IMG/VR virus record: IMGVR_UViG_3300050821_002957
Location: 124,001-188,000 of that record
Direction: 5' to 3' (one strand)
Length of the DNA: 64,000 nucleotides
The notes under the pieces are model-generated. The model ran no database searches. It was not told the origin of the DNA and worked only from the letters and a program-made list of their open reading frames with translations. Both the position numbers and the translations under genes were made by a program. Position 1 is the first letter of the stretch. Each line of letters opens with the position of its first letter. Positions 1-60,276 of this stretch are shown in pieces.

Positions 1-424
1 TTTCTCCAAATACAATATTGCTTCTTTTAAAATCTTGGGATCATCTTGAACATTCCCCAACAATACATTACATGTTAGACACAAAATCCCTCTGACCTTG
101 TTAGTTACGTGAGAATGATCCACATTAGGAATCGTTTTCCTAGTGACTCGATCCAATACCACCTTACAAATTGCACAGCAGCCACCTTGTTCTGCAAATA
201 TCAAATCGAAAGTTTCTGGTGTAATTCCATACTTATGCATTCGTCTAGATTTTGGACCGTTTACCTTACGCCAATGTGCAAGGTAACTTTTATGTCTAGG
301 CGTTTGTTTCGTTGCTCGTCGGCACGCCACACACTTTTTTGTGCTTACATATCGAGTTGTGGCACCACACTTCACACACGCATGTCCATCAAACGTTTCT
401 AGTGGTTTTTTCGGTCTGTATTGT

Positions 425-4558: not shown

Positions 4559-4771
4559 TTAATCTCGTCCCGATCCCCAAGTGTTGTTTGGCTCGTATGA
4601 GCATTGTTCGACCGTTGCCATTGCACGAACAAAAACGATGCCACCATGTTCTACCTCTGGAAGAGAGAAATCAATATCTTTGATGTCACACTTAAGATTT
4701 TTGCGGATTAGATATTGTTTAATTGCTAATTTGATCTCTGGCTCGTCAAGAGTTACTTGGTGTGTCAACAT
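4559..4771 (-). CDS. hypothetical protein
   Basis: 70-aa ORF. Confidence 0.5.
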   Translation of the reverse strand: MLTHQVTLDEPEIKLAIKQYLIRKNLKCDIKDIDFSLPEVEHGGIVFVRAMATVEQCSYEPNNTWGSGRD

Positions 4772-6208: not shown

Positions 6209-6285
6209 TGGTAGCGGATCTAGGAGTCGAACCTAGTATCTCAAGGTTATGAGTCTTGAATGGTTGTCCGTTCCACTCACCCGCA
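6209..6285 (-). tRNA. tRNA-Met(CAT), initiator-like (1:72 mismatch)
   Basis: Loop CTCATAA, CCA end, U1/U72 mismatch. Confidence 0.85.
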
Positions 6286-6803: not shown

Positions 6804-6880
6804 TGGTTGCGGCAGATGGCTTCGATCCATCGACTTCTTGCTTATGAGGCAAGCGTTCTACCGGGCTGAACTATACCGCA
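6804..6880 (-). tRNA. tRNA with CAT anticodon (Met or Ile2)
   Basis: Cloverleaf with cttgc-CTCATAA-gcaag anticodon arm; CCA. Confidence 0.9.
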
Positions 6881-6889
6881 AAAACTTTC

Positions 6890-6971
6890 GCAATGAACAA
6901 ATTTTTCAATGTCGGGTTTTCCTGGCATCTTAAAAGAACGCTGATAACCAACATCTTCGGCTCATCACTGC
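6890..6971 (-). ncRNA. short Y RNA-like ncRNA lacking the tRNA module (YrlB-like), copy 5
   Basis: GAUGAGCCGAA...GUUAUC...UUUGUUCAUU; begins 5 nt after a TATAGATA late-type promoter. Confidence 0.7.
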
Positions 6972-7000
6972 TTTACTATCTATACACGCAAAAATTGTGT

Positions 7001-7135
7001 AGAGCGAACAAATATGTAGGTCTCCGCTTGTAACTACCGCCCGGACGCAATCAATATTACTACTGACTGCGGTATGGAATCGAACCACATCGCCTTTTTT
7101 GCAGAAAGAGAACAGAAACCCAGGCGGCTCACTCT
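7001..7135 (-). ncRNA. Y RNA-like ncRNA, copy 6
   Basis: GUGAGCCG/UUUGUUCGC stem; T arm UGUGG UUCGAUU CCAUA; closed acceptor-like stem; TTGACA/TATTCT and CTAAATA promoters directly upstream. Confidence 0.72.
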
Positions 7136-7175
7136 GACTTATTTAGAATACCACACCCAGTCACAGTGTCAAGTA

Positions 7176-10550: not shown

Positions 10551-10625
10551 TGGGGTGCTATGAGAGGCTCGAACTCTCCCTAACAGGTTCACAGCCTGTT
10601 GTGCTACCGCTACACTAAAAGCACC
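10551..10625 (-). tRNA. tRNA-His(GTG)
   Basis: Loop CTGTGAA, G-1, C73, CCA. Confidence 0.93.
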
Positions 10626-10857
10626 ATAATGGTCAACGTCTGAACAATTTCTGACACTCAACATACCATCGATCAACGACTTTGTTGTTGGGCCAGCCTG
10701 CCGCCTCTAAAACAATTGCGGCTTTCATGTCATCAACGTCAACGAACTTTTCTTCAAGTGATAATCCAAGCTCGACCATTAACTTCTCGAGAACTTGAAC
10801 CTCTTGAACAATCTCACCTTCAAACTCACCGAACAGCATGAATTGTCTCATAAATTT

Positions 10858-10931
10858 TGGCTCCCGGTCAGAGACTCGAACTCCGATTAGAGGCTTCAGA
10901 GGCCCCTGTCCTGCCATTAGACGAACCGGGA
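10858..10931 (-). tRNA. tRNA-Gln(CTG)
   Basis: Loop CTCTGAA, CCA. Confidence 0.93.
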
Positions 10932-10935
10932 ATAA

Positions 10936-11496
10936 CTAAACTCGTTTCACATTGCGACCAGCAAACGTTTCTGTTTGACTGTTGCAATTCGGACATAACA
11001 GCCGAAGATTGTCCAGTCTGTTATCATCCTTCACCCCATTGATATGGTCAAGCACCATCACCAACATTTTTCCGTTCCATTCCGGCTGCTGGCCACAATC
11101 ACTACACTCATTCGCCAGTATACCATCTCGGATCAAACGATTTTTCAAGTGTCCTCGATTGTATGTCGATCCCTCTACCAAAACATTCAACAATGAAACT
11201 GATCGTTCCTCAATATTCGGTACGATTCGACCACACTCAACCGACTTATACCATGATGCCGGATTCATCCCAAATTTGTTAATACACTCCCGAAAAGAAG
11301 CTCCTCTATCAATCTCTTTTTGTACAGCAGTCCAATCATATCGCTGTGCGCCATCACGACCCATAAAGACTATGGACGGATTCTCAGCATGGCGGCGTGC
11401 ATGATAACTAATCGTAGATCGAGCACAACCCAATTCTTTTTCAATCTCTCGATACGAACGTCCTTCTTTCAACAACTGAATAATACGATGCTTCAT
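10936..11496 (-). CDS. HNH homing endonuclease with N-terminal HTH
   Basis: GRSYREIEKELG HTH; LDHINGVKDDNRLDNLRLLCPNCNSQT; CTAAATA-N5-ATG start. Confidence 0.92.
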   Translation of the reverse strand: MKHRIIQLLKEGRSYREIEKELGCARSTISYHARRHAENPSIVFMGRDGAQRYDWTAVQKEIDRGASFRECINKFGMNPASWYKSVECGRIVPNIEERSVSLLNVLVEGSTYNRGHLKNRLIRDGILANECSDCGQQPEWNGKMLVMVLDHINGVKDDNRLDNLRLLCPNCNSQTETFAGRNVKRV

Positions 11497-11574
11497 AATC
11501 CTATTTAGGTAGGATCAAGATTTCACCACATCATCCATACTACTTTGGTTCGACCGCCACTCACATTTTAGTTT

Positions 11575-11808
11575 TCAAGCAAAATACCAAAATAACCAGA
11601 CGGTCAATACAGATGAGAGGGACGAAACAAAAATGGCCATCAACCAACTCATTGGACCGAACAACAAATACAGAAAAATGTATCCAGCGCCGCCGCCCAT
11701 ACTGCCGATGAAGTAAGCCAAAAGCGGAGCCTTCCAACTGACAACTGCTCCACTAGAATTCTCCGTCAACCTGTTAAACAATCTGTACGGCTCACGTTTC
11801 AAAAACAT
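11575..11808 (-). CDS. small membrane protein
   Basis: Two transmembrane-like segments; SD gagg upstream. Confidence 0.55.
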   Translation of the reverse strand: MFLKREPYRLFNRLTENSSGAVVSWKAPLLAYFIGSMGGGAGYIFLYLLFGPMSWLMAIFVSSLSSVLTVWLFWYFA

Positions 11809-11825
11809 GTTTCCTCTTTCAAAAT

Positions 11826-11899
11826 TGGCACCGGGGCGTGGTATCGATCCACGGTCTTGGGTTTCAAAGACCCACGTTCTACCATTGAACTAACCCGGT
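11826..11899 (-). tRNA. tRNA-Gln(TTG)
   Basis: tgggt-CTTTGAA-accca anticodon arm, G73, CCA. Confidence 0.9.
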
Positions 11900-11910
11900 A
11901 TAAACTTTTT

Positions 11911-11984
11911 TGGTAGCCCTGGAGAGAATCGAACTCTCGTTCTCTGACTGAGAATCAGGTGTCCTCCCACTAGACGACAAGGCC
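11911..11984 (-). tRNA. tRNA-Glu(CTC)
   Basis: Loop TTCTCAG, CCA. Confidence 0.92.
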
Positions 11985-12214
11985 ACAACAAACCTAACCG
12001 AACGTTTCTTTCAACGTTGCTTTGGGATTTATAAACCCACTCATGAGACATACCAAACCATTCGAGCCGCCGACTGCAAGTAGCTCTTGGCTTTGTCTCC
12101 AGGGATTACCATCTTCATCCCGACTGGTTTCTACACTCACAAAAATCTTTTCGCCGGAATCATACTTCTCCAACAATTTCCGTAGATCCCCGACTGTCTC
12201 AACCTTTTCTGCCT

Positions 12215-12817
12215 TCATACCGATAAGCCTCGAAACGTCAAACTCACACGAGGACCACAATTCTGAATCGAACTCTTCGGAATTCGATGAAAATGTGTAT
12301 CCTGCATCCCGGCTTCCATCAGACACAAACTACCAGAGTCAAGCCACAACTTCGTGACATTGGTAGTATCTGGTTTCACCGTAGTCAATGTCGTCTCTCC
12401 CATCGCCGTAGTCTTAATCGCTGGTGCAAAATAAATCTCTCGTCTCGCACCCAACGACACAATCGCAATAGGACGCTCGTCATCCATTTCAGGAGAGTCG
12501 TCGGCGTGCCAGCCTAACTGGTCGCTTCCATCACGATAGCCGTTGAGGAAACACACTTCAAAACGGCATCCTGCAATCTTCTCTGCACCCTCTCGAATCG
12601 CCGTAATGACCGGATGCCACGGCTGCGCCTCATAAGTCCGCACGCCAGCACCACGCCCATACGTATACGGCAGGCCCGAATCGTTGCAATAATACTCCGA
12701 CCGAGGCGTCTGATCACGTCGCACCCAGGCCAACTCTTTCCATAGAGTTTCAAACACAGTCGCCGAATCAGCAACGAATTCCTGCACGTATTTTATCGGT
12801 ACGCCGTTCATGATCAT
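12215..12817 (-). CDS. AlkB-family 2OG-Fe(II) dioxygenase
   Basis: NGYRDGSDQLGWHADD, IVSLGA, HRIPK and RVSLTFR motifs. Confidence 0.93.
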   Translation of the reverse strand: MIMNGVPIKYVQEFVADSATVFETLWKELAWVRRDQTPRSEYYCNDSGLPYTYGRGAGVRTYEAQPWHPVITAIREGAEKIAGCRFEVCFLNGYRDGSDQLGWHADDSPEMDDERPIAIVSLGARREIYFAPAIKTTAMGETTLTTVKPDTTNVTKLWLDSGSLCLMEAGMQDTHFHRIPKSSIQNCGPRVSLTFRGLSV

Positions 12818-13008
12818 CCTTTCCGAATTGCAATAATCTTGTCCAAAGTTGCTCGATTAAGCTGGACAGTGATTCTCCGATCCAACAAATTCTCTGGACC
12901 CTCATTCACCTTACACCGAAGCTCAATCGTGCTGCCATCCATCGTGACAGCAACCATCTCTACTACGACCGCACGAACAGGAATCATACAAATCCTTTCG
13001 CAAAAATT

Positions 13009-13083
13009 TGGTAGCGATACGGGGAATCGAACCCCGATTCTGAGAGTGAAAATCTCATGTCCTAACCGTTAGACGATATCGCC
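13009..13083 (-). tRNA. tRNA-Glu(TTC)
   Basis: tgaga-TTTTCAC-tctca anticodon arm, CCA. Confidence 0.95.
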
Positions 13084-13127: not shown

Positions 13128-14426
13128 CTACTGTGCCTGACCCTGATAGCTGGCCGCATCAATCGCAGCCGCCGCAATCTCTTCAGACGACTTTCTCAGT
13201 GTCTTCTTTACCTTCACCGGAGCCATATCTTCCGGCAATCGAAACGCAATGCCCTTGGCGATTTGCGGCAAACCATCGTGGCTGAAGCCCTGATACTTCA
13301 CCGTCAACTGCTGACCGAGATACTTATCGGCTTCCAAGAACAACTCAGCACGGTCGGCCAACGTTCCATTCGGCACAACAAAGAACACACCCGGAACATC
13401 ATCACGATAGGCCGTCTTCATCAAGTTGCCGGTTTTTTCTTTACCTTCCAGGCTGAACCCAGGAACCACACACTGCCAAATCACACAACCGGCATGACCA
13501 CCTTCGGCCTGCTTGAAACCAACAACCTCGAACTCGGCATCTTCAAAGAGCTTGATCTTCAACAAATTCTTCGAGCGCACACCGGACTCATACTTGCCAT
13601 GCTTATTCCGCAACATCGAACCTTCAAATTTACTCTCGATGCATTTCTCTTGAAAAGCCAGCACTTGCTCTTCGTTTTCCACTTCCAACGTCAAAACCTT
13701 CACCAGATGCGGCGTACCAGGATCAGCCGTCATCCAATCGCCCGGAACCAACGCAACCAAATCGGCGATGCGCTGTTCCTGAATGCGATCTTCTTCACCT
13801 TCGCACATTGGAACGTCATAAATGTGAAATTCCAATTTCTTCGACTCAGGATAATTGTTCGACAACCACTTCTGAATCGTCTGCCGCTTTACACCGTGAA
13901 AATACATCTCGCCGTCAAACATGGCGTCACGAGGCATCACCTTTTCCAACTGCGCCTTGATGTGCGGAGCCTGCCATTCCTTGCCGCCACGAGTCATTAA
14001 GACGATCCGGTCGCCGTCCCAATACGCTAGACACCGGGCACCATCCAACTTCGGCTGCACGAACGCCGGATACTTCGCATAACGATTCGTGCTCTTTGCT
14101 GGCCCACGTTCTTTATCAATGAACTTTTCGTTCGGAGCCAACATCACTTCGATCTTCCGGGTCACGCCGACGTTTTCGACGCCGACCACGTACTTGTGCT
14201 CAACCTTGTGCTTCCATTCGGCGACGGCTTCATTTTCAGCCTGAATTTCCGGGGTAGTTGCATTCGCTTTTCCCACGTTCTTGGCTTCACATGCCCGTCG
14301 ATGGGTGATCAGCTTGCCACCGACCTGTCCAGCTTCGATTACAATCTCATTGCCTTCGGTCCAAATTCGCCACTGAAGCAAAGCTCCAGTCGAACTCTTT
14401 CGATAAAGTGTTGGTAAAGTGTCCAT
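13128..14426 (-). CDS. ATP-dependent DNA ligase
   Basis: QPKLDGARC, FDGEMY, EGSMLR, LLKIK and LTVKYQ motifs; start at MDTLPTL after a TATAAT promoter. Confidence 0.93.
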   Translation of the reverse strand: MDTLPTLYRKSSTGALLQWRIWTEGNEIVIEAGQVGGKLITHRRACEAKNVGKANATTPEIQAENEAVAEWKHKVEHKYVVGVENVGVTRKIEVMLAPNEKFIDKERGPAKSTNRYAKYPAFVQPKLDGARCLAYWDGDRIVLMTRGGKEWQAPHIKAQLEKVMPRDAMFDGEMYFHGVKRQTIQKWLSNNYPESKKLEFHIYDVPMCEGEEDRIQEQRIADLVALVPGDWMTADPGTPHLVKVLTLEVENEEQVLAFQEKCIESKFEGSMLRNKHGKYESGVRSKNLLKIKLFEDAEFEVVGFKQAEGGHAGCVIWQCVVPGFSLEGKEKTGNLMKTAYRDDVPGVFFVVPNGTLADRAELFLEADKYLGQQLTVKYQGFSHDGLPQIAKGIAFRLPEDMAPVKVKKTLRKSSEEIAAAAIDAASYQGQAQ

Positions 14427-14516
14427 GCTGAAAATTATACCACACGCAGACAAAAAGATGCAACTACTTGCGAACGTTTATTTTAGGGGAACCGAGAATC
14501 AGGACGATTTCGGCGG

Positions 14517-14600
14517 TTACTGATGTCGATGAACCTGCACACCAGTCCCCACACGTTCTTGCTGTTGCTCGTGTTGGTGTTGATGTGTCATGTTCTTCAC
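14517..14600 (-). promoter_or_regulatory. His/Gln/Glu-rich leader mini-ORF (MKN)MTHQHQHEQQQERVGTGVQVHRHQ*
   Basis: TATAAATA (14606-14613) 5 nt before GTG; hairpin after the stop; upstream of Glu, Glu, Gln, Gln, His tRNAs. Confidence 0.65.
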
Positions 14601-15525
14601 GTTTTTATTTATACAGACAAACAAATTTGGTGGAAGGTCTCTCAGCCATATGGGTGGTATACGTGCCTTCCACCATCCATATCGCACCCTGGTCGTCAAA
14701 GAACCTTCCAGGATCACAGGGTTAATTAGTGTTCCAAAAAGCCTTACAGCCAACCCTGTATCTTTTATACCACTTCTTTTTCAGGATGTCAAGCACCAAC
14801 CAAAAAAGATTTTATATCTGGGTTTTGGATTGTTTAGCGGCTTGATGCTGCCATCTGTGTTGATCTTGATTATGCGTTCGGTGTCTGCCATTATGTTCCT
14901 TTTTTGACGCATCCACATTTTCTCCAATGTAGATGTCCATTACCATGTAGACACTTCACGCAACCGCACGAAGGACGCTGCCAAAGCTCATTGCCATGAA
15001 TGCATTTTACAGGCATCGGCGTCGGAAGTGCCTTGAAATGAAAAAATTTTCTGAAACGATCACGCATCGCCACAGTTCGAGGATCACCCAGGTCAATTTT
15101 ATTCAGATAATCAGCCATCAAAAGTGCAAAGGGCATTATTCCTCCGCTTGTGGACCCAGAAGAGCTTCGATCACAGCCGGATCATTGGTTGTGCTGATAA
15201 TCATATCGGGAATCTGACAACCACTTCCATCGTCATCTCGTGCATCAGGTTTGAAAACGAGAACAGCAGTGAGTCCATTTTGACCTGCTTCTTTGATCAG
15301 ATCGAGATATTCTTGATATGAGGTCATCCATGATCGTAATTATACAACAGGGATGAAAATAAATCCAGGCTCTTGATTAGTTATTTGTTGGTAGACGATC
15401 AGTGCTTCGTTTGGTGTCAAGGAGTCATCAACGTAAACGATAGGGCAAATTTCTTTGGCTTTCACAACATCATCAGAATGACAGATGATGTATTTAACGA
15501 GTGAAGGTGAGGCATTCATAAATTG

Positions 15526-16062: not shown

Positions 16063-16115
16063 TGCCGGGACGATTTCTCTCCCGGCAGTTAATCTGATGT
16101 CTGTGTTCGTGTCAT
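16063..16115 (-). promoter_or_regulatory. leader mini-ORF MTRTQTSD* (16089-16115) plus 8-bp hairpin (16063-16087)
   Basis: TATAATA-N4-ATG; three ACA codons and a GAT; directly upstream of the Asp, Asp, Thr(TGT) tRNAs. Confidence 0.6.
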
Positions 16116-29515: not shown

Positions 29516-30943
29516 ATGAATTTTGAAACTTTGAAGCACACAAACTATGGGGCAACTGTCGTAACGCTCTCGAAGTTTGTTGCATTGGAAAAGGGTGATG
29601 GTGGCCGTCAGGCGTGCGACAACGTGAAAGCTGCGTTGATTTTTGGTATGCAGGTTATCGTCAGCAAGGATGTCGAAGCTGGTTCGGTAGGTCTGTATTT
29701 CCCTGCGGAGACTGCGCTGTCAGCAGAATTCCTGGGTCAGAACAACCTCTATCGCAAGGCCGAGTTTGGCAACACCGATCCCGAAAAGAAGGGATTTTTC
29801 GAGCAGCATGGTCGTGTCCGTGTCGTGAAGTTCCGTGGTCACAAGTCGGAAGGCTTCTGGATTCCGCTGGACTCACTCAAGTATCTGGGCCTGCCGCTGT
29901 CGGAATTTCCAGTTGGTGCTGAATTCGATTTTGTGAACGAACACGAAATCTGCCACAAGTACATTCCTCGCCGTAACCGGGTGTCGAATCCTTGTGCGCC
30001 TCGTGGCCGTAAGGCTCGTGTCGAAGACAAGCTGGTAGACGGTCAGTTCCGTTTCCATATCGATACGGCGCAGCTTCGTCGTAATGCTCATCGTATCGAA
30101 CCGGACACGTTAATCTCGGTGTCTGAGAAGTGGCATGGTACGTCGGCCATCTTCTCGAACATCCTGGTAAAGCGTGATCTGGCGTGGTATGAGCGTGCGC
30201 TGAAGTGGCTGGGCACGAAGATCCAGGAATACGAATTCGGTTTCACCTGGGCGTCTCGCCGTGTTGTGAAGGGTGTGGATGGCGAAGCAAAGAAGGATGC
30301 CGTTCATTTTTACTCGACCGACATCTGGGGCACGGTCGCAAAGGAAGTCCAGGAATTCATTCCGAAGGGCTTCACGATTTACGGCGAAATTGTCGGCTTT
30401 ACGCCGGATGGTGGTGCGATCCAAAAGGGTAAGACTGGTGTTTACCATTATGGTTGCCAGCCGGGTACGCATCGCTTCTTGGTGTATCGTGTCACGTCAA
30501 CGAACTACGATGGTAAGGTCGTAGAACTGGCGTGGCCGCAAATGAAGGAATTCTGCCGCAAGTACGGTCTCGAAATGGTCAAGGAACTATACTATGGCCG
30601 TGCGGATGGATTCTTTCCGATGGATCGAGTTGAAGCGTTCGACAACGAAGGCTATTCAATCGGTAATCGCAACATGACGCTCGACGAATGGCAGGAAGGT
30701 TTTGTCAAGGCGCTTGAAAAGGCGTTTGTCTATGACCAGATGTGCCAACACAACAACATGGAAGTTCCGGCAGAAGGTGTCGTGGTCCGTGTTGAACGCT
30801 ACGACGAATGCGAAGCCTTCAAACTGAAGTCGTTCCTGTTCCTCCAGCACGAGTCTGATCAGTTGGACAAGGGCGAACTGGACATGGAAACGGCAGAAGC
30901 CGAAGGTGGCGCTGACGAAGTTACGGAAGGCGCAGAAGCATGA
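29516..30943 (+). CDS. RNA ligase, DRB0094-like (N-terminal OB-like domain)
   Basis: VKFRGHKSEG, EKWHGTS, IYGEIVG, EGVVVR and FKLKS motifs. Confidence 0.85.
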   Translation: MNFETLKHTNYGATVVTLSKFVALEKGDGGRQACDNVKAALIFGMQVIVSKDVEAGSVGLYFPAETALSAEFLGQNNLYRKAEFGNTDPEKKGFFEQHGRVRVVKFRGHKSEGFWIPLDSLKYLGLPLSEFPVGAEFDFVNEHEICHKYIPRRNRVSNPCAPRGRKARVEDKLVDGQFRFHIDTAQLRRNAHRIEPDTLISVSEKWHGTSAIFSNILVKRDLAWYERALKWLGTKIQEYEFGFTWASRRVVKGVDGEAKKDAVHFYSTDIWGTVAKEVQEFIPKGFTIYGEIVGFTPDGGAIQKGKTGVYHYGCQPGTHRFLVYRVTSTNYDGKVVELAWPQMKEFCRKYGLEMVKELYYGRADGFFPMDRVEAFDNEGYSIGNRNMTLDEWQEGFVKALEKAFVYDQMCQHNNMEVPAEGVVVRVERYDECEAFKLKSFLFLQHESDQLDKGELDMETAEAEGGADEVTEGAEA

Positions 30944-35731: not shown

Positions 35732-35999
35732 AATCCTCTTTACAATCGTTCATGGATCTGTTAGTATTTGGTCCATGAACGATTCCCTAAAAGGCACAAT
35801 GAATTTGAATGAACTGATCATGGGTGTTCGGGCGGAACCGGCATTTAATGGTAAGGTTCGTCTTAAGTATCTTGCAATTTCAGGAGGCTGTGGCCCGGAA
35901 CTGAGCATGGACTTCGATTTAGCAAGAAAAACCATCATGGCATTGGAAACGGCAATGGCGGGTGGAACCTACGAAAGCGAATAAAGGTACATCTACCTG

Positions 36000-52236: not shown

Positions 52237-52586
52237 TTGTTCATGACGTACCGTATTCGTTTTCGCAACATAGGTTCCTTGCACGAATCGGAACCAAAGA
52301 CTTTCAATGAGGCATGGGTTATCGCCATCAATCTCTCCCATTGGAATCAGCGTGTCGATATTATTGACGCTGAGACCGGCGAAGTACTCAAATCCTCAGA
52401 ACCGTACTCCGAGAATGGGGCACGGCAACTTGAAGCGATGCTGGCGCAGTAAAGGCCAATCCTGGTGATTCGTGGAGCCTCTGCTGTTCGAGGCTCTCCC
52501 CACCGGGGTCTTATAAATAAAAACGTGGCAACCCCACATAGGAGGTCATCAATGTCAAGATTTATAGCTTAGGAGGCTTTAAATAC

Positions 52587-53495
52587 ATGCGTGATGACAT
52601 CGTAAAACTCATTTACGAAAAAGAGCGGGGAGGATCTCGTTCAAAGTCCCTCAAGACTGGAAAGAAACTCGATCCTCGCATTGACTATGACGACGATTTT
52701 GATTGGGGTCCGAAACGGATTTCCATAGCTCGTCGTAAAGAATATGGTTGGGACTGCAAGAGTCTCAATTACAATTTGCGTCCTCTCTATCGGTTCCTGG
52801 ATCAGTCTGTGGGCCGACCTTGGAATGACGTACACAGCGAGATCCACAGTCAGATTGATCCTCGCACAGCCAACGGCCACACCATTTACAAATGCATGGA
52901 TCACCACGTTGACTCGCATGGCAATGGTGTAGTAAGCTGGCGGCGTTACGGCGGTGGTTTGTACGTCGATGATGACGGTATCCTTTGCAAGACCGAATAC
53001 CATCCTCGTCAACGTCCTGAAGTGCCTGTGACTTCGCTGCACTGGTACGATAATATCTGGTTTCAGCTTCACACTTTTAAGACCAAGGCAAAGTGTGGAT
53101 GCGTTCACTTCAAGGAGCCGGTTCATCCTGAGGATGCTGATAAACCTCGTTGGTATCGTCCGTATCGAAACGAGCCTGCCGTCTGCATCCACGGTAACGA
53201 ACCTCTCACTCGTGAAATTTGGTACGTTGTCGAATACGTCTACCACAAGCCGGATGAAATCTACATGGTTCACAAGCTCGAAGACTATCGTCAACCTGGA
53301 GGCGGTCTTCGGCGTGGCTATGAGAAGTGGGGCCTGAGCGAAAGCTACCCGGTTCACTATGTCTACTATCGTGACGTTCCTGAGAAAATGAAGGACCCAA
53401 TTGAAAAGTTGACCAAGCGCCGCACTGCAAACCGCAAACACTTGAAGCTCATTCGTAAAGCATTGGAAAAGGCCGCTGGACAAAAAGCGGCCTGA
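52587..53495 (+). CDS. hypothetical protein
   Basis: 302-aa ORF with SD aggagg; PLYRFL..VGRPWNDVHSEI and LYVDDDGILC motifs. Confidence 0.7.
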   Translation: MRDDIVKLIYEKERGGSRSKSLKTGKKLDPRIDYDDDFDWGPKRISIARRKEYGWDCKSLNYNLRPLYRFLDQSVGRPWNDVHSEIHSQIDPRTANGHTIYKCMDHHVDSHGNGVVSWRRYGGGLYVDDDGILCKTEYHPRQRPEVPVTSLHWYDNIWFQLHTFKTKAKCGCVHFKEPVHPEDADKPRWYRPYRNEPAVCIHGNEPLTREIWYVVEYVYHKPDEIYMVHKLEDYRQPGGGLRRGYEKWGLSESYPVHYVYYRDVPEKMKDPIEKLTKRRTANRKHLKLIRKALEKAAGQKAA

Positions 53496-56073: not shown

Positions 56074-57054
56074 ATGTCAAAGCCAGACAAAAAAGATTCA
56101 GTGATCCTTACCGGGACCATTGGATCTCATAGCTACGGAACGGCCACGCCGACTTCAGATTACGACTACATGTCCGTCGTGATTGCATCGTCTGACGTGT
56201 ACCTGGGTCTTGACAATTGGGGAACTGCTGGAACCAAAGACGACGTTTACGAAGATCCCGAAAAGAGTCTGGTCGAACATCGGTATTTTGAATTGAAAAA
56301 GTTCGTTGGTATGTGCGCCGGAATGAACCCAAATGCAGTTCCGCTTTTGTGGCTGCAACCGGAGCACTACGAAACCATGTCGGCGGCTGGTAGAAAGCTC
56401 GTCCAGGCCCGAGAGATTTTTAATTCCAAAAAAGCATACGATACGTTCTCTGGTTACGCTCATGGTCAGCTTCAAAAAATGGGCGGCGTGTTCAATGATG
56501 CCGAAGAGTCGAACAAACTCTTGAAGCAAGGTCATATCAAATTTCAAGACTGGTCTGAAGACATGATCAAGCTGCTTCGGATGATTCGTGATGGAAAGTC
56601 ACCGATCCCTGAAGACGCCAAGCCTGCGGACATTTACATTTACGACGAAGGATGGTTGAACGCTCTTATTGCCTTGAAGACTCATTCCAAGGAAGAGATC
56701 AAGCGTATCAAAGACGGTCCAATCACCGGGCGCATGGGAGCGAAGCGGAAAGAGCTTCGTTCTCAATATGGTTTCGACACTAAATTTGCTTTTCATACGA
56801 TTCGACTGATGAGAATGTGCGTCGAATTTCTTACGCACCCTGAAGAAGGTCTGAAGGTGTACCGCAAAGACATCGATGCTGACTTCTTGTACTCAATCAG
56901 AACCGGCGCTGTCTCACAAGAAGACATCAAGAAGATGGCCGACGACCTGTTCGCTCAAGCCAAAGAAGCCTTGGTCACCACGTCTCTTCCAGATAAGCCT
57001 GACACCGAAGCAATTCATAACTTGACGATGGACCTGATTAGATCATCCATTTGA
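56074..57054 (+). CDS. Pol-beta-type nucleotidyltransferase (YcgL/RlaP-like)
   Basis: GSHSYGTATPTSDYD, NPN and FDTKFAFHTIRL motifs. Confidence 0.85.
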   Translation: MSKPDKKDSVILTGTIGSHSYGTATPTSDYDYMSVVIASSDVYLGLDNWGTAGTKDDVYEDPEKSLVEHRYFELKKFVGMCAGMNPNAVPLLWLQPEHYETMSAAGRKLVQAREIFNSKKAYDTFSGYAHGQLQKMGGVFNDAEESNKLLKQGHIKFQDWSEDMIKLLRMIRDGKSPIPEDAKPADIYIYDEGWLNALIALKTHSKEEIKRIKDGPITGRMGAKRKELRSQYGFDTKFAFHTIRLMRMCVEFLTHPEEGLKVYRKDIDADFLYSIRTGAVSQEDIKKMADDLFAQAKEALVTTSLPDKPDTEAIHNLTMDLIRSSI

Positions 57055-59060: not shown

Positions 59061-59214
59061 TGATACTACAATCACTAAAACAATTTTTGGGACGCATTAT
59101 GTTTTAGTCTCCTTGGGATGTTCCCTTCGGTATTTAGTTGCTAGAATATTTCTTCCGGCATAGGAAAATTTTATAAGGTATTGACAGGATACGGGTCTTG
59201 TGCTATAAATAGAG

Positions 59215-59490
59215 TCGTAGCAGATAGTCGAAGTGAACGAAGAACGCTTCTTGGACATGGGTTCAATTCCCATCGGCTCCACCAAAATTCTGATTTTAGG
59301 CATCAGAGAACTTATGGGGCCGCCCCGGTTTCGACAGGATGAGATGTTGCGTAAGCAGGGCTACCGTGGTCCTTGTCCACGTTATCCAGAAGGAATCATA
59401 AACGCTAATGCACCTGCATTTGCTTTCGCTGCCGCTGCCTAAACAGCGCTCGAACGAAGTCGGAGAACTTTGTTAAAGAACTCCCAACAG
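59215..59490 (+). ncRNA. ssrA: two-piece (circularly permuted) tmRNA, tag ANAPAFAFAAAA
   Basis: T arm and CGGCUCCACCA (ends 59284) precede GGGGCCG...GGUUUCGAC (starts 59316); G3.U70 pair; tag ORF 59404-59442; TTGACA/TATAAA promoter upstream. Confidence 0.92.
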
Positions 59491-59521
59491 AAGGCCGGGG
59501 CAACTCGGCCTTTTGCTTTTT
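59491..59521 (+). terminator. intrinsic terminator after the tmRNA
   Basis: aaggccggg-gcaa-ctcggcctt hairpin followed by a T run. Confidence 0.85.
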
Positions 59522-59681
59522 GAAAGGTTGTGTTTATGAGACGACATTTGAAAATGGTCCATCACCACGGCAAACGAGCACTAAAGTCTAAGTACGGACA
59601 GGTGTTCATCATCCTGTGGTTCGTGCCGGAAGCCATTGCACTTTTTGGTTTGATATGGGCTGCATGGCGACACCTTGTAAA

Positions 59682-60040: not shown

Positions 60041-60104
60041 ATGGTACGTTTTTCCACCATCACGACAAGCACTACCACGACCGTCTAGTTCCTCTAGAAC
60101 GGTC
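60041..60104 (+). promoter_or_regulatory. thrL-like leader peptide MVRFSTITTSTTTTV* (60041-60088) with hairpin (60079-60104)
   Basis: 7 Thr in 10 codons; CTAAATA-N5-ATG; 35 nt upstream of two tRNA-Thr genes. Confidence 0.8.
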
Positions 60105-60123: not shown

Positions 60124-60199
60124 GCCGAATTAGCTCAGTTAGCAGAGCGCCGCCCTCGTAATGCGGAGGTCATGAGTGCAACTCTCATATTCGGCTCCA
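60124..60199 (+). tRNA. tRNA-Thr(CGT)
   Basis: Loop CTCGTAA, CCA; atypical T loop TGCAACT. Confidence 0.9.
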
Positions 60200-60202
60200 A
60201 AT

Positions 60203-60276
60203 GCCGCCTTATTTCAATGGTAGACTCTATCTCTGGTACAGATAGGATTTGGGTTCGATTCCCAAAGGCGGCTCCA
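60203..60276 (+). tRNA. tRNA-Thr(GGT)
   Basis: tatct-CTGGTAC-agata anticodon arm, CCA. Confidence 0.9.

Follow-up and report, generated by a model that had tools for sequence, protein, structure and literature searches.

Short ORFs matched in codon content to the tRNA genes that follow them in a giant phage

Bacteria couple the transcription of several operons to the progress of a ribosome on a short leader ORF, and this leader-peptide attenuation is a textbook mechanism for amino-acid biosynthesis and for one tRNA synthetase operon. In the enterobacterial hisL, thrL, trpL, leuL and pheL leaders, the ORF carries a run of codons for the amino acid concerned, the RNA around its 3' end folds in mutually exclusive ways selected by ribosome position, and a GC hairpin with a U-tract serves as terminator. 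The pheM leader of the pheST (phenylalanyl-tRNA synthetase) operon applies the same principle to a gene of the translation apparatus, whereas tnaC of the tna operon, mgtL and others act through Rho and lack an intrinsic terminator. T-box riboswitches, in contrast, read one specifier codon without translation. In phages such as T4 and T5, tRNA genes are clustered among small ORFs and homing endonuclease genes, and T4 late promoters (TATAAATA) are read by gp55 with gp33 and the sliding clamp. No case in which leader-peptide attenuation governs tRNA genes themselves is known to us, and full-text literature searches found no description of one. Here, a conserved mini-gene rich in His and Gln codons is described upstream of a giant phage's DNA ligase gene and Glu/Gln/His tRNA genes, together with similar mini-genes before Thr, Asp/Thr and Met tRNAs, an arrangement which suggests that the phage adjusts tRNA production by sensing ribosome stalling on those codons.

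A His/Gln-rich ORF ahead of the ligase and tRNA genes

The DNA analysed, referred to as the window, comprises 64,000 nucleotides (positions 124,001 to 188,000) of the IMG/VR record IMGVR_UViG_3300050821_002957. A preliminary description of this sequence had pointed to a perfect TATAAATA 5 nt before a GTG, to an ORF in which 14 of 24 residues are His, Gln or Glu with both codons of each amino acid in use, and to the agreement of these amino acids with five canonical tRNAs on the same strand, while cautioning that a ligase gene with its own promoter intervenes, so that the leader would control only part of the (late) transcription. This observation is confirmed at the stated coordinates (Table 1). 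The ORF has 5 His, 7 Gln and 2 Glu, encoded by CAT x3, CAC x2, CAA x4, CAG x3, GAG x1 and GAA x1, and the tRNAs were placed by ARAGORN and Rfam. The interpretation that had been given to it, however, is supported only in part, as set out below.

Table 1. Positions of the leader ORFs, their predicted RNA elements and the neighbouring genes in the window
Feature	Position	Strand	Details
Upstream sigma-70-type promoter and structured RNA	14614..14792	-	TTGACA 14792-14787, 17 nt, TATAAA 14769-14764; about 140 nt of structured RNA ending in a terminator-like hairpin (GGTGGAAGG 14674-14666 with CCTTCCACC 14637-14629, then AAATTTGTTTGT)
78-aa ORF	14753-14517	-	Frame open from the TTG at 14753
TATAAATA promoter element	14606..14613	-	Matches the T4 late-promoter consensus; no -35 box; 14 nt before the leader ATG
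In-frame GTG	14600-14598	-	Follows TATAAATA after 5 nt (aaaac)
Leader ORF	14517..14591	-	24 codons, MTHQHQHEQQQERVGTGVQVHRHQ; ATG 14591-14589, TAA 14519-14517
Region 1	14559..14588	-	A+C-rich run of His/Gln/Glu codons (codons 2-11); predicted stalling site and 5' arm of the alternative 1:2 hairpin
Region 2	14538..14558	-	G+U-rich core GAACGTGTGGGGACTGGTGTG (ERVGTGV); predicted to pair with region 1, or with region 3 and the CCCC tract
Region 3	14519..14525	-	CATCAGT, last two codons plus first base of the stop; 3' strand of helix P2, pairing with ACTGGTG at 14546-14540
Hairpin P3	14492..14513	-	CCGAAATC / gtcct / GATTCTCGG; starts 3 nt after the stop codon
TTCCCC tract	14486..14491	-	CCCC (14489-14486) pairs with GGGG (14550-14547) to close a three-way junction (helix P1)
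Sigma-70-type ligase promoter	14434..14463	-	TTGCAT 14463-14458, 18-nt spacer, TATAAT 14439-14434; ends 7 nt before the ligase ATG
ATP-dependent DNA ligase gene	13128..14426	-	ATG at 14426; Pfam PF01068, 3e-17
tRNA run	10551..13083	-	Glu(UUC) 13083-13009, Glu(CUC) 11984-11911, Gln(UUG) 11899-11826, Gln(CUG) 10931-10858, His(GUG) 10624-10551; interrupted by an AlkB-like gene, an HNH endonuclease gene and small ORFs
Second leader	60041..60088	+	MVRFSTITTSTTTTV; 7 Thr among 14 residues after the start Met; 35 nt before tRNA-Thr(CGU)
Hairpin at second leader	60079-60104		Contains the stop codon
tRNA-Thr genes	60124-60199, 60203-60276		Thr(CGU), Thr(GGU)
Third leader	16089..16115	-	MTRTQTSD; three ACA codons and one GAT; starts 5 nt after a promoter -10 box
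Hairpin after third leader	16086-16064
tRNA-Asp, tRNA-Asp, tRNA-Thr(UGU)	16055-15981, 15900-15823, 15599-15526		In that order

Among all 2948 ORFs of 12-45 aa in the window, this one has the highest H+Q+E fraction, with a binomial p of 6e-8 against the window's own amino-acid usage, although the Glu component is not enriched by itself (2 of 23 residues). The TATAAATA element alone is not significantly enriched, with 3 copies against 0.82 expected and 7 of 100 shuffles reaching 3. All three window copies and 10 of 11 copies in relatives nonetheless lie between genes on the coding strand, and the 16-mer TATAAATAAAAACGTG recurs exactly at 52512 before a gene with a strong ribosome-binding site. 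The position and the lack of a -35 box agree with a T4-type late promoter in the window and in the relatives L028, L031, L034, L035 and L033 (numbers of this form denote sequences of relatives). As to the late-transcription apparatus, relatives carry T4-type gp32 and gp59, and a weak gp33-like (Trans_coact) hit lies next to these genes in L040, which is compatible with a T4-like late promoter but, with gp55 not sought outside the window, does not decide whether that apparatus is present. Half of the TATAAATA sites in this phage group also have a consensus TTGACA at 17 nt, so they may simply be strong host-type promoters. The promoter further upstream may be a second, early promoter with a long 5' UTR for the same leader, the GGTTGG after its -10 box matching the start of the 5' UTR in L010 and L035.

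Conservation and predicted folding of the leader

The preliminary description had stated in advance that its reading would fall if the peptide were only the C-terminus of the 78-aa ORF with no internal promoter, and the comparative data refute this possibility, leaving it with next to no credence. Although the long frame is open in the window, it has no homologues and is closed upstream in six of the eight sequences compared, whereas the short ORF is kept in all of them, and both a conserved promoter element and a terminator-like hairpin lie inside the putative 78-aa ORF. These sequences are the window and seven relatives whose ligases are 53-80% identical. TATAAATA is kept at the same place in seven of eight, L033 having TCTAAATA instead. 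The ATG is in frame with the conserved core and with a stop 1-4 nt before hairpin P3 in 8 of 8, despite seven different lengths before the core (9-15 codons) and four after it (14-17 codons from the core through the stop). The ATG frame has no stops in 8 of 8, frame +1 has stops in 8 of 8, and the last codon is Gln in all 8. The N-terminal half keeps its composition but not its sequence, the H+Q+E enrichment persisting with p between 7e-3 and 5e-9. Ligase is the next gene in all 8 relatives, and the order leader, ligase, then Glu/Gln/His tRNAs is kept in every relative whose contig reaches that far, the tRNAs following in the window, L028, L029, L031, L033 and L034. Beyond this group, the best ligase match in cultured phages is only about 35% identical, DNA searches hit only tRNA-Glu, and the core motif was found in IMG/VR only in the window's own two contigs. 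In distant ligase relatives (about 30% identity, L013-L015), Gln-Glu-Arg-Ile-Lys tRNAs lie upstream of ligase and have no leader.

The 3' half of the ORF lies in a conserved RNA fold for which RNAalifold predicts helices P1, P2 and P3. Four pairs of P3 keep pairing through changes on both sides in 4-5 of 8 sequences, and the 21-nt core is identical in 4 relatives with only 3 variable columns among 6, although the ligases are only 53-77% identical, being nearly invariant even at synonymous sites. Two mutually exclusive pairings are predicted, the core pairing either with the His/Gln codon run (1:2) or with the last codons plus the CCCC tract (2:3, helices P2 and P1) around a constant P3. Masking a ribosome footprint on the His/Gln run gives P2 plus P3 in 8 of 8 sequences, mostly with P1, and masking at the stop gives the 1:2 hairpin in 7 of 8; since P1 and P2 are mostly invariant and the 1:2 pairing was given no formal covariation test, these predictions do not settle whether ribosome position selects the fold. 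The whole-region fold is no more stable than shuffles (z = -0.6). Rfam found only tRNAs and a permuted tmRNA at the gathering threshold, and only chance-level hits at E <= 10 in 14300-15000, so that neither a T-box nor a known leader family is present there.

The same data bear on two readings that dispense with a sensing role. A non-coding structured RNA (an sRNA or a processing signal) with an incidental open frame would be in line with the conserved P1-P3, the covariation of P3, the lack of a Shine-Dalgarno sequence in most copies and a frame +2 that is also open in 5 of 8 sequences. This reading appears very unlikely, however, given the in-frame ATG kept over seven different distances to the core, tandem ATGs that are also in frame, the fixed position of the stop, the absence of an Rfam match, and equivalent ORFs with other cognate codons before other tRNAs. 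A functional His/Gln-rich micropeptide, for example a metal-binding or protein-binding peptide whose surrounding RNA structure only stabilises or terminates a small mRNA, is also unlikely. The conserved ERVGTGV core and H-x-Q C-terminus, the ORF's own promoter and the hairpin directly after the stop, as at the 3' end of a small transcript, would fit such a peptide, but the conservation at synonymous sites points to RNA-level constraint, the N-terminal half drifts in sequence, no homologous protein family was found, and the ORFs before other cognate tRNAs are left unexplained.

No hairpin-plus-U-tract terminator was found after the leader. P3 is followed by UUCCCCUAAAA, no terminator-like site is predicted between 14517 and 13083, and the other leaders lack a U-tract as well; the defining terminator of classical attenuators is thus missing, while nothing predicted as a terminator would stop a transcript between the leader and the first tRNA. 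A hairpin followed by UCCC was considered as a phage-specific terminator, with one striking further case at 35743-35790, but was dropped because the motif is not enriched over control motifs (7.2% against 3.7-9.0%). The -35 and -10 boxes before ligase are kept with a variable spacer in 9 relatives, the -10 box ending 5-9 nt before the ATG, so the ligase mRNA is probably leaderless. With this promoter directly before the ligase ATG, tRNA transcription does not depend on the leader, from which the tRNAs lie 1.4 kb downstream.

Codon-matched ORFs before other tRNA genes

Three further leader/tRNA pairs strengthen the link between codons and tRNAs. The Thr-rich ORF before tRNA-Thr(CGU, GGU) is conserved as MVIFNTTTRTTTTV in L039 and MNMQLTFSTSRTSTTKTA in L040, and the ACA/Asp ORF before Asp-Asp-Thr(UGU) as MTRTQTSDL in L035 and MTFTRTTSDDTDIV in L034, while an ORF beginning MRMRM precedes three tRNA-Met genes in L034. 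The corresponding ORF of the window before tRNA-Met (VMSRRCWLSAFF) is not Met-rich, so the Met leader rests on L034 alone. The cognate sets are enriched (p 3e-6 to 9e-3 for the Thr and Thr/Asp leaders, 0.06 for the Met leader) and the unrelated sets are not. Thr codon choice also follows the downstream anticodons, ACA being 10 of 11 Thr codons before tRNA-Thr(UGU) but 3 of 20 before Thr(CGU, GGU) (Fisher p 6e-5), against 21% of Thr codons genome-wide. Every leader ends in, or 0-4 nt before, a stable hairpin that a ribosome two codons before the stop would melt. Most leaders lack a recognisable Shine-Dalgarno sequence, the families are few, and the sequences within a family are related rather than independent. 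Some relatives have a promoter directly before the same tRNAs with no leader at all (L028 Thr and L029 Asp). The motif GAACATG was examined as a start-site signal and occurs in 18 copies against about 9 expected, only some at gene starts, which leaves such a role undecided.

The leader bodies are 75-87% A+C, and RNA of that kind encodes Thr, His and Gln in its three frames, so the binomial p-values overstate the codon-tRNA match. A+C-rich tracts are common on both strands of the window and were rejected as a specific marker of leaders. It is conceivable, though unlikely, that the ORF is a real translated regulatory ORF serving only ligase or its own transcript, its match with the tRNAs being a by-product of an A+C-rich, unstructured 5' coding tract, for example for Shine-Dalgarno-independent initiation or as a Rho loading site. 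The constant position of ligase as the next gene, the intervening ligase promoter, the absence of Glu enrichment and the Thr-rich or His-rich reading of the other frames favour this view. In contrast, the ATG-defined frame is the cognate one in all 14 sequences of the three A+C-rich families, Thr codon usage tracks the anticodons, the Met leader is not A+C-rich, the Thr and Thr/Asp leaders directly abut tRNAs with no protein gene to regulate, and A+C-rich tracts elsewhere in the window are not associated with tRNAs.

A possible sensor of tRNA supply and its relation to described systems

The likeliest reading, held with no more than moderate confidence, is that the 24-codon ORF is a translated, cis-acting leader of the his/thr/pheST attenuator type that reports how well the infected cell decodes His and Gln codons, and perhaps Glu codons, and that belongs to a set of codon-matched leaders placed ahead of tRNA genes by this group of uncultured, T4-related giant phages. 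The comparative analysis itself establishes the conservation of the ORF, its ATG, its frame and the position of its stop, the conserved fold around its 3' half with its predicted alternative pairings, and the cognate tRNA genes that follow; everything beyond this is inference. In this view, a ribosome stalling on the His/Gln codons, in the 5' run or in the last codons before the stop, would change which structure forms next to the stop codon and so let transcription from the TATAAATA promoter, and possibly from the upstream sigma-70 promoter, continue through ligase into the tRNA genes, whereas a ribosome that translates smoothly and leaves at the stop would allow shut-off. That the leader controls transcription into the tRNAs is not shown; expression data are lacking, and the response of read-through to the supply of charged tRNA was not measured. 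In the absence of a U-tract, shut-off is more likely to be Rho-dependent termination on the exposed C-rich, G-poor RNA, as for tnaC, or a processing or decay step, than classical intrinsic termination. The net effect would be negative feedback, scarce cognate tRNA raising phage tRNA output and ample tRNA lowering it.

A more far-reaching possibility, which is tentative and somewhat less likely than not, is that this lineage runs a tRNA homeostat. Each tRNA cluster would be preceded by a short translated ORF made of the very codons its tRNAs read, down to the isoacceptor (ACA before Thr-UGU, ACG/ACC/ACT before Thr-CGU/GGU), and stalling would switch on transcription or maturation of the phage's own replacement tRNAs when the host pool is scarce or has been destroyed, for example by anticodon nucleases. 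This would be the first case of leader-peptide attenuation controlling tRNA genes, and a phage sensor for tRNA-targeting host defence. If control of this kind is real, phages would do more than carry tRNAs and would meter each set according to how well its codons are being read, which bears on why phages keep tRNA genes at all and how they cope with defences that cut or deplete specific tRNAs. The same genomes carry a tmRNA, RNA ligases, an RlaP RNA-repair protein, an AlkB-like oxygenase, IF3 and an ArfB-like release factor, so the leaders would fit into a broad translation-maintenance toolkit. A codon-matched mini-ORF plus hairpin before a tRNA also provides a simple signature that can be searched for in all phage genomes.

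Among the described systems, T-box riboswitches likewise couple expression of translation genes to the state of a specific tRNA through codon-anticodon recognition in a cis-acting RNA, but they have a conserved T-box sequence and a terminator/antiterminator pair, whereas a translated ORF with many cognate codons is present here. The T4 tRNA cluster resembles this locus in its setting, but no cognate-codon leaders are, to our knowledge, described for it, and a simple scan of a T5-like tRNA array (Salmonella phage S124) found none. With the Rho-dependent attenuators the locus shares a leader of similar size (TnaC has 24 residues), the lack of an intrinsic terminator, C-rich, G-poor RNA around the stop codon, and, in the proposed mechanism, a ribosome at or near the stop that would mask RNA needed for termination. 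The leader bodies are 29-47% C and 10-17% G and UCCCC-type tracts follow the hairpins, but as such tracts are common in the window and the Rho dependence, rut site and stalling signal were not assayed, this composition does not tell whether the leader is of the tnaC type; the proposed signal is tRNA supply rather than a free amino acid or an ion. The pheM leader controls a synthetase through an intrinsic terminator, while here the products are the tRNAs themselves and the terminator is absent. In codon content the ORFs resemble the leaders of the amino-acid operons, MVRFSTITTSTTTTV closely resembling E. coli thrL and the His run resembling hisL. In contrast to these, however, the element is found in a phage, the downstream genes are tRNA genes (plus a ligase) rather than biosynthetic enzymes, and several amino acids are combined in one leader, His and Gln (and possibly Glu) in one case and Thr and Asp in another.

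A conserved short ORF ahead of the ligase and tRNA genes

The window, an identical part of the 405,631-bp IMG/VR contig IMGVR_UViG_3300050821_002957, belongs to an uncultured giant phage with T4-like replication genes and a large translation and RNA-repair module, this description resting on the T4-type gp32, gp59 and weak gp33-like hit carried by relatives together with the gene content of the window itself. No cultured phage is close, the best ligase match being about 35% identical and DNA searches hitting only tRNA-Glu. The window has a G+C content of 46% and encodes 14 tRNAs and a permuted tmRNA, an RNA ligase and an RlaP RNA-repair protein, as well as an AlkB-like oxygenase and an HNH endonuclease among the tRNAs. 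With the RF-1/GGQ-domain (ArfB-like) gene also carried by this phage group, the RNA ligase, RlaP and AlkB-like genes, lying among or near the tRNAs, look like a broad translation-maintenance and RNA-repair toolkit.

Everything in the preliminary description, which had drawn attention to a His/Gln/Glu-rich leader upstream of ligase and of a run of Glu, Gln and His tRNAs, is present on the minus strand, and its observation is thus confirmed. The element TATAAATA is followed by 5 nt and an in-frame GTG, and the ORF beginning at the subsequent ATG encodes MTHQHQHEQQQERVGTGVQVHRHQ, in which 14 of 24 residues are H, Q or E and both codons of each are used. Among the 2948 ORFs of 12-45 aa in the window this ORF has the highest H+Q+E fraction, with a binomial p of 6e-8 against the amino-acid usage of the window. 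Glu, however, is not enriched in this ORF, making "His/Gln leader" the safer name. TATAAATA alone is not significantly over-represented in the window, with 3 copies against 0.82 expected.

Positions of the features in the window and in loci of relatives (L numbers)
Feature	Sequence	Positions	Strand
TATAAATA element	window	14613-14606	-
GTG of the leader	window	14600	-
ATG of the leader	window	14591	-
TAA of the leader	window	14519-14517	-
P1, GGGG with CCCC	window	14550-14547 with 14489-14486	-
P2, ACTGGTG with CATCAGT (last codons plus first stop base)	window	14546-14540 with 14525-14519	-
P3 hairpin	window	14513-14492	-
Ligase promoter-like site, TTGCAT-18-TATAAT	window	14463-14434	-
Ligase	window	14426-13128	-
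tRNA Glu, Glu, Gln, Gln and His	window	13083-10551	-
Upstream promoter and structured RNA	window	14614-14792	-
Differing structured sequences at the equivalent place, with tRNA T-arm-like motifs	L035; L028	2470-2590; 7690-7720	
Hairpin before tRNA-Glu(UUC)	window; L031	13084-13127; 1700-1752	- (window)
Thr leader	window	60041-60088	+
Hairpin containing the Thr leader stop codon	window	60079-60104	+
tRNA-Thr(CGU) and tRNA-Thr(GGU)	window	60124-60276	+
Thr/Asp leader	window	16115-16089	-
tRNA Asp, Asp and Thr(UGU)	window	16055-15526	-
Met leader	L034	9573-9620	
ORF MILREHIET plus hairpin	L034	about 4720-4750	
Permuted tmRNA	window	59192-59533	+
Second copy of the 16-mer TATAAATAAAAACGTG	window	52512-52527	+
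Gene with AGGAGG	window	52587-53495	+
Hairpin followed by UCCCUAAAA	window	35743-35790	+
Promoter and tRNA-like RNA	window	6880-7171 (promoter 7171-7140; T-arm and acceptor end about 7095-7065)	-
tRNA called by Rfam only	window	6212-6285	-
Hint/intein-like interruption of ligase	L010	about 620-979	
RF-1/GGQ-domain (ArfB-like) gene, RNA ligase, RlaP and AlkB-like oxygenase	L032; window	2-334; 29516-30943, 56074-57054 and 12215-12817	

The 78-aa ORF that contains the leader has no homologue among 5.8 billion proteins. Using ligase as an anchor, seven distinct relatives with sequence upstream of ligase were recovered, namely the loci L010 (80% ligase identity to the window), L031 (77%), L028 (75%), L029 (71%), L033 (63%), L035 (55%) and L034 (53%). 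All seven have the short ORF, as MTMTHQHQHQHEQQQERVGTGVQVHQHSRQ, MTHQLQHEQQQERVGTGVQVHQSHQ, MTLHQHHEQERVGTGVSVFHHQHRQ, MNMTLHQHQQPHEQERVGTGVSAVLHRQ, MTMTHQHQHREQLERVGTGASFHQHRQ, MIYILHQHQPERGDGVFIVSEHPIQ and MKNALHQRHEHRERVMGVFFEQHIQ. That the peptide might be only the C-terminus of the 78-aa ORF had been put forward in advance as grounds for abandoning the reading, but the frame upstream of the ATG is closed in six of the eight sequences, so this objection fails. A translated ORF is further supported by the number of codons between the ATG and a conserved core, which takes seven values (9-15), and between the core and the stop, which takes four (14-17), while the ATG, including the tandem ATGs, is nevertheless always in frame and the stop always lies 1-4 nt before the same hairpin. 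The ATG frame never contains a stop, whereas frame +1 does in all eight sequences. In a further relative, L032 (64%), an endonuclease VII gene occupies the place where the leader would be, and there is no leader. The ligase of L010, for its part, is interrupted right after the active-site KLDG by a Hint/intein-like sequence beginning with Cys, although the Pfam Hint hit (E = 1.6e-6) is below the curated cut-off.

In further support of a translated ORF, TATAAATA is kept in seven of the eight sequences, L033 having TCTAAATA instead, and 10 of 11 TATAAATA copies in the relatives lie between genes on the coding strand, before this leader, the tmRNA, the Thr leader described below and gp32. In the window, an exact copy of the 16-mer TATAAATAAAAACGTG recurs 75 nt before a gene with an AGGAGG ribosome-binding site, this second copy being preceded by a hairpin plus UCCCC, and the permuted (two-piece type) tmRNA lies behind a TTGACA-17-TATAAATA promoter next to the Thr leader, an arrangement also found in L039, a relative recovered through the HNH gene neighbouring that leader. 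Upstream of the His/Gln leader, a consensus-like promoter (TTGACA-17-TATAAA) is followed by about 140 nt of structured RNA ending in a 9-bp hairpin plus AAAUUUGUUUGU, directly before the TATAAATA. Relatives have different structured sequences here, some with tRNA T-arm-like motifs, and there is no Rfam match.

Predicted RNA folds around the stop codon

The 21-nt core GAACGTGTGGGGACTGGTGTG is identical in four sequences and has three variable columns among six, although the ligases of those phages share only 53-77% of residues, so the core is also constrained as nucleic acid. RNAalifold applied to the eight sequences predicts a three-way junction of P1, P2 and P3, the last being a hairpin that starts just after the stop and in which four pairs are kept through changes on both sides in 4-5 sequences. 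Single-sequence folds show a competing long hairpin, the minimum-energy fold in five of eight sequences, in which the A+C-rich His/Gln codon run pairs with the G+U-rich core (the 1:2 hairpin). When a 30-nt ribosome footprint is masked on the His/Gln run, P2 plus P3 are predicted in eight of eight sequences, mostly with P1, whereas placing the footprint on the stop codon causes P2 and P3 to be lost and the 1:2 hairpin to return in seven of eight. This is the logic of an attenuator. However, P3 is followed by UUCCCCUAAAA rather than by a U-tract, and no terminator-like site is predicted anywhere between the leader and the first tRNA. A very stable hairpin (-20.6 kcal/mol) at the end of the 795-aa AAA ATPase gene is followed by UCCCUAAAA, the same tail as that of P3, but this motif is not statistically enriched overall. 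A conserved hairpin, GGUGGGCGG...CCGCUCACC, also lies directly before tRNA-Glu(UUC), with a compensating difference in L031.

Codon-matched leaders before other tRNA genes

A composition scan of all small ORFs and inspection of the sequence before every tRNA gave three more cases. The first, a thrL-like Thr leader in the window, reads MVRFSTITTSTTTTV and lies 35 nt before tRNA-Thr(CGU) and tRNA-Thr(GGU), with a hairpin containing its stop codon. It is conserved as a Thr-rich ORF, MVIFNTTTRTTTTV in L039 and MNMQLTFSTSRTSTTKTA in L040, the two relatives found through the neighbouring HNH gene. In these two, a roughly 50-codon ORF lies between the leader and the tRNAs, and a protein gene in between, as with ligase, is therefore not exceptional. 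The second, the eight-codon Thr/Asp leader MTRTQTSD (three ACA codons and one GAT), starts 5 nt after a promoter -10 box and is followed by a hairpin and by tRNA Asp, Asp and Thr(UGU), with longer versions, MTRTQTSDL and MTFTRTTSDDTDIV, in L035 and L034, respectively. The third, MRMRMSNLDASVPSF, precedes three tRNA-Met genes in L034. This Met leader rests on a single sequence, as does a nine-codon ORF in L034, MILREHIET, which with a hairpin lies just before tRNA Glu, Glu, His and His. Elsewhere in the window, a promoter is followed by RNA with a tRNA-like T-arm and acceptor end that ARAGORN does not call, and one tRNA is called by Rfam only.

Each Thr and Thr/Asp leader is enriched for its own cognate set (p 3e-6 to 9e-3), and no leader is enriched for an unrelated set, while the Met leader reaches only p = 0.06. 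Thr codon choice follows the anticodon, ACA making up 10 of 11 Thr codons before tRNA-Thr(UGU) but 3 of 20 before Thr(CGU, GGU), where ACG, ACC and ACT dominate (Fisher p 6e-5; genome-wide, ACA is 21% of Thr codons). Every leader ends in, or 0-4 nt before, a stable hairpin that a ribosome two codons from the stop would melt, and none of these hairpins has a U-tract. In the His/Gln leader the last codon is Gln in eight of eight sequences, with His two to four codons earlier, so that cognate codons lie next to the hairpin there too. In contrast, two relatives have the same tRNAs directly behind a promoter with no leader and no hairpin (Thr in L028 and Asp in L029), and the hairpin therefore goes with the leader rather than with tRNA processing. 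A T5-like tRNA array (Salmonella phage S124) scanned as a control showed no such leaders.

The codon content might nonetheless have another origin. The bodies of the His/Gln, Thr and Thr/Asp leaders are 75-87% A+C, and RNA of that kind reads as Thr-rich in one frame and His/Gln-rich in another, the window Thr leader reading HHHDKHYHD in frame +2 and the Thr/Asp leader HEHRHQ in frame +1. A+C-rich tracts are also common in the window. The binomial p-values therefore overstate the case, and an RNA-level reason for the composition is possible, candidates being an unstructured initiation region for mRNAs that mostly lack a Shine-Dalgarno sequence or a C-rich, G-poor Rho loading site. Four observations are hard to explain in this way: the ATG sets the cognate frame in all 14 sequences of these families, the Thr isoacceptor match holds, L034 shows Asp enrichment, and the Met leader is not A+C-rich. 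Sequences within a family are relatives rather than independent trials.

Proposed mechanism and comparison with known attenuators

The preliminary interpretation, that the leader acts on part of the transcription into the tRNAs, is partly supported, and we hold the regulatory reading with moderate confidence, as somewhat more likely than not. The sequence analysis itself establishes a conserved, translated-looking ORF with cognate codons, alternative predicted RNA folds around its stop codon, and cognate tRNA genes downstream. It is an inference from these that ribosome stalling on the cognate codons alters the fold next to the stop and raises transcription or survival of the downstream RNA, giving negative feedback on tRNA supply. 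As the classical terminator is absent and the RNA around the stop is C-rich and G-poor, Rho-dependent termination that is blocked while a stalled ribosome covers the leader, as in tnaC, is favoured over intrinsic termination, although a processing or decay switch is not excluded. For the His/Gln leader itself the effect can only be partial. Ligase has a sigma-70-type promoter whose -35 and -10 boxes are conserved in the window and in L010, L028, L029 and L031-L035, the -10 box ending 5-9 nt before the ATG with no Shine-Dalgarno sequence, and the ligase mRNA, like that of the Thr/Asp leader, is thus probably leaderless. L028 also encodes an IF3 homologue.

Leader-peptide control is an established kind of regulation, and what would be new here is its application to phage tRNA genes. 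Full-text literature searches found no report of leader peptides controlling tRNA genes in phages or bacteria, though this is not proof of absence. TATAAATA without a -35 box equals the T4 late-promoter consensus, the gp55/gp33 apparatus having been traced no further than the weak gp33-like hit in a relative. The element is not a T-box. It resembles tnaC-type Rho-dependent attenuators in size and layout, a likeness that was not put to any test here. In the proposed reading it works like the hisL, thrL and pheM attenuators, but it fails one of their defining features, the intrinsic terminator, and for that reason is not classed as a member of that group.
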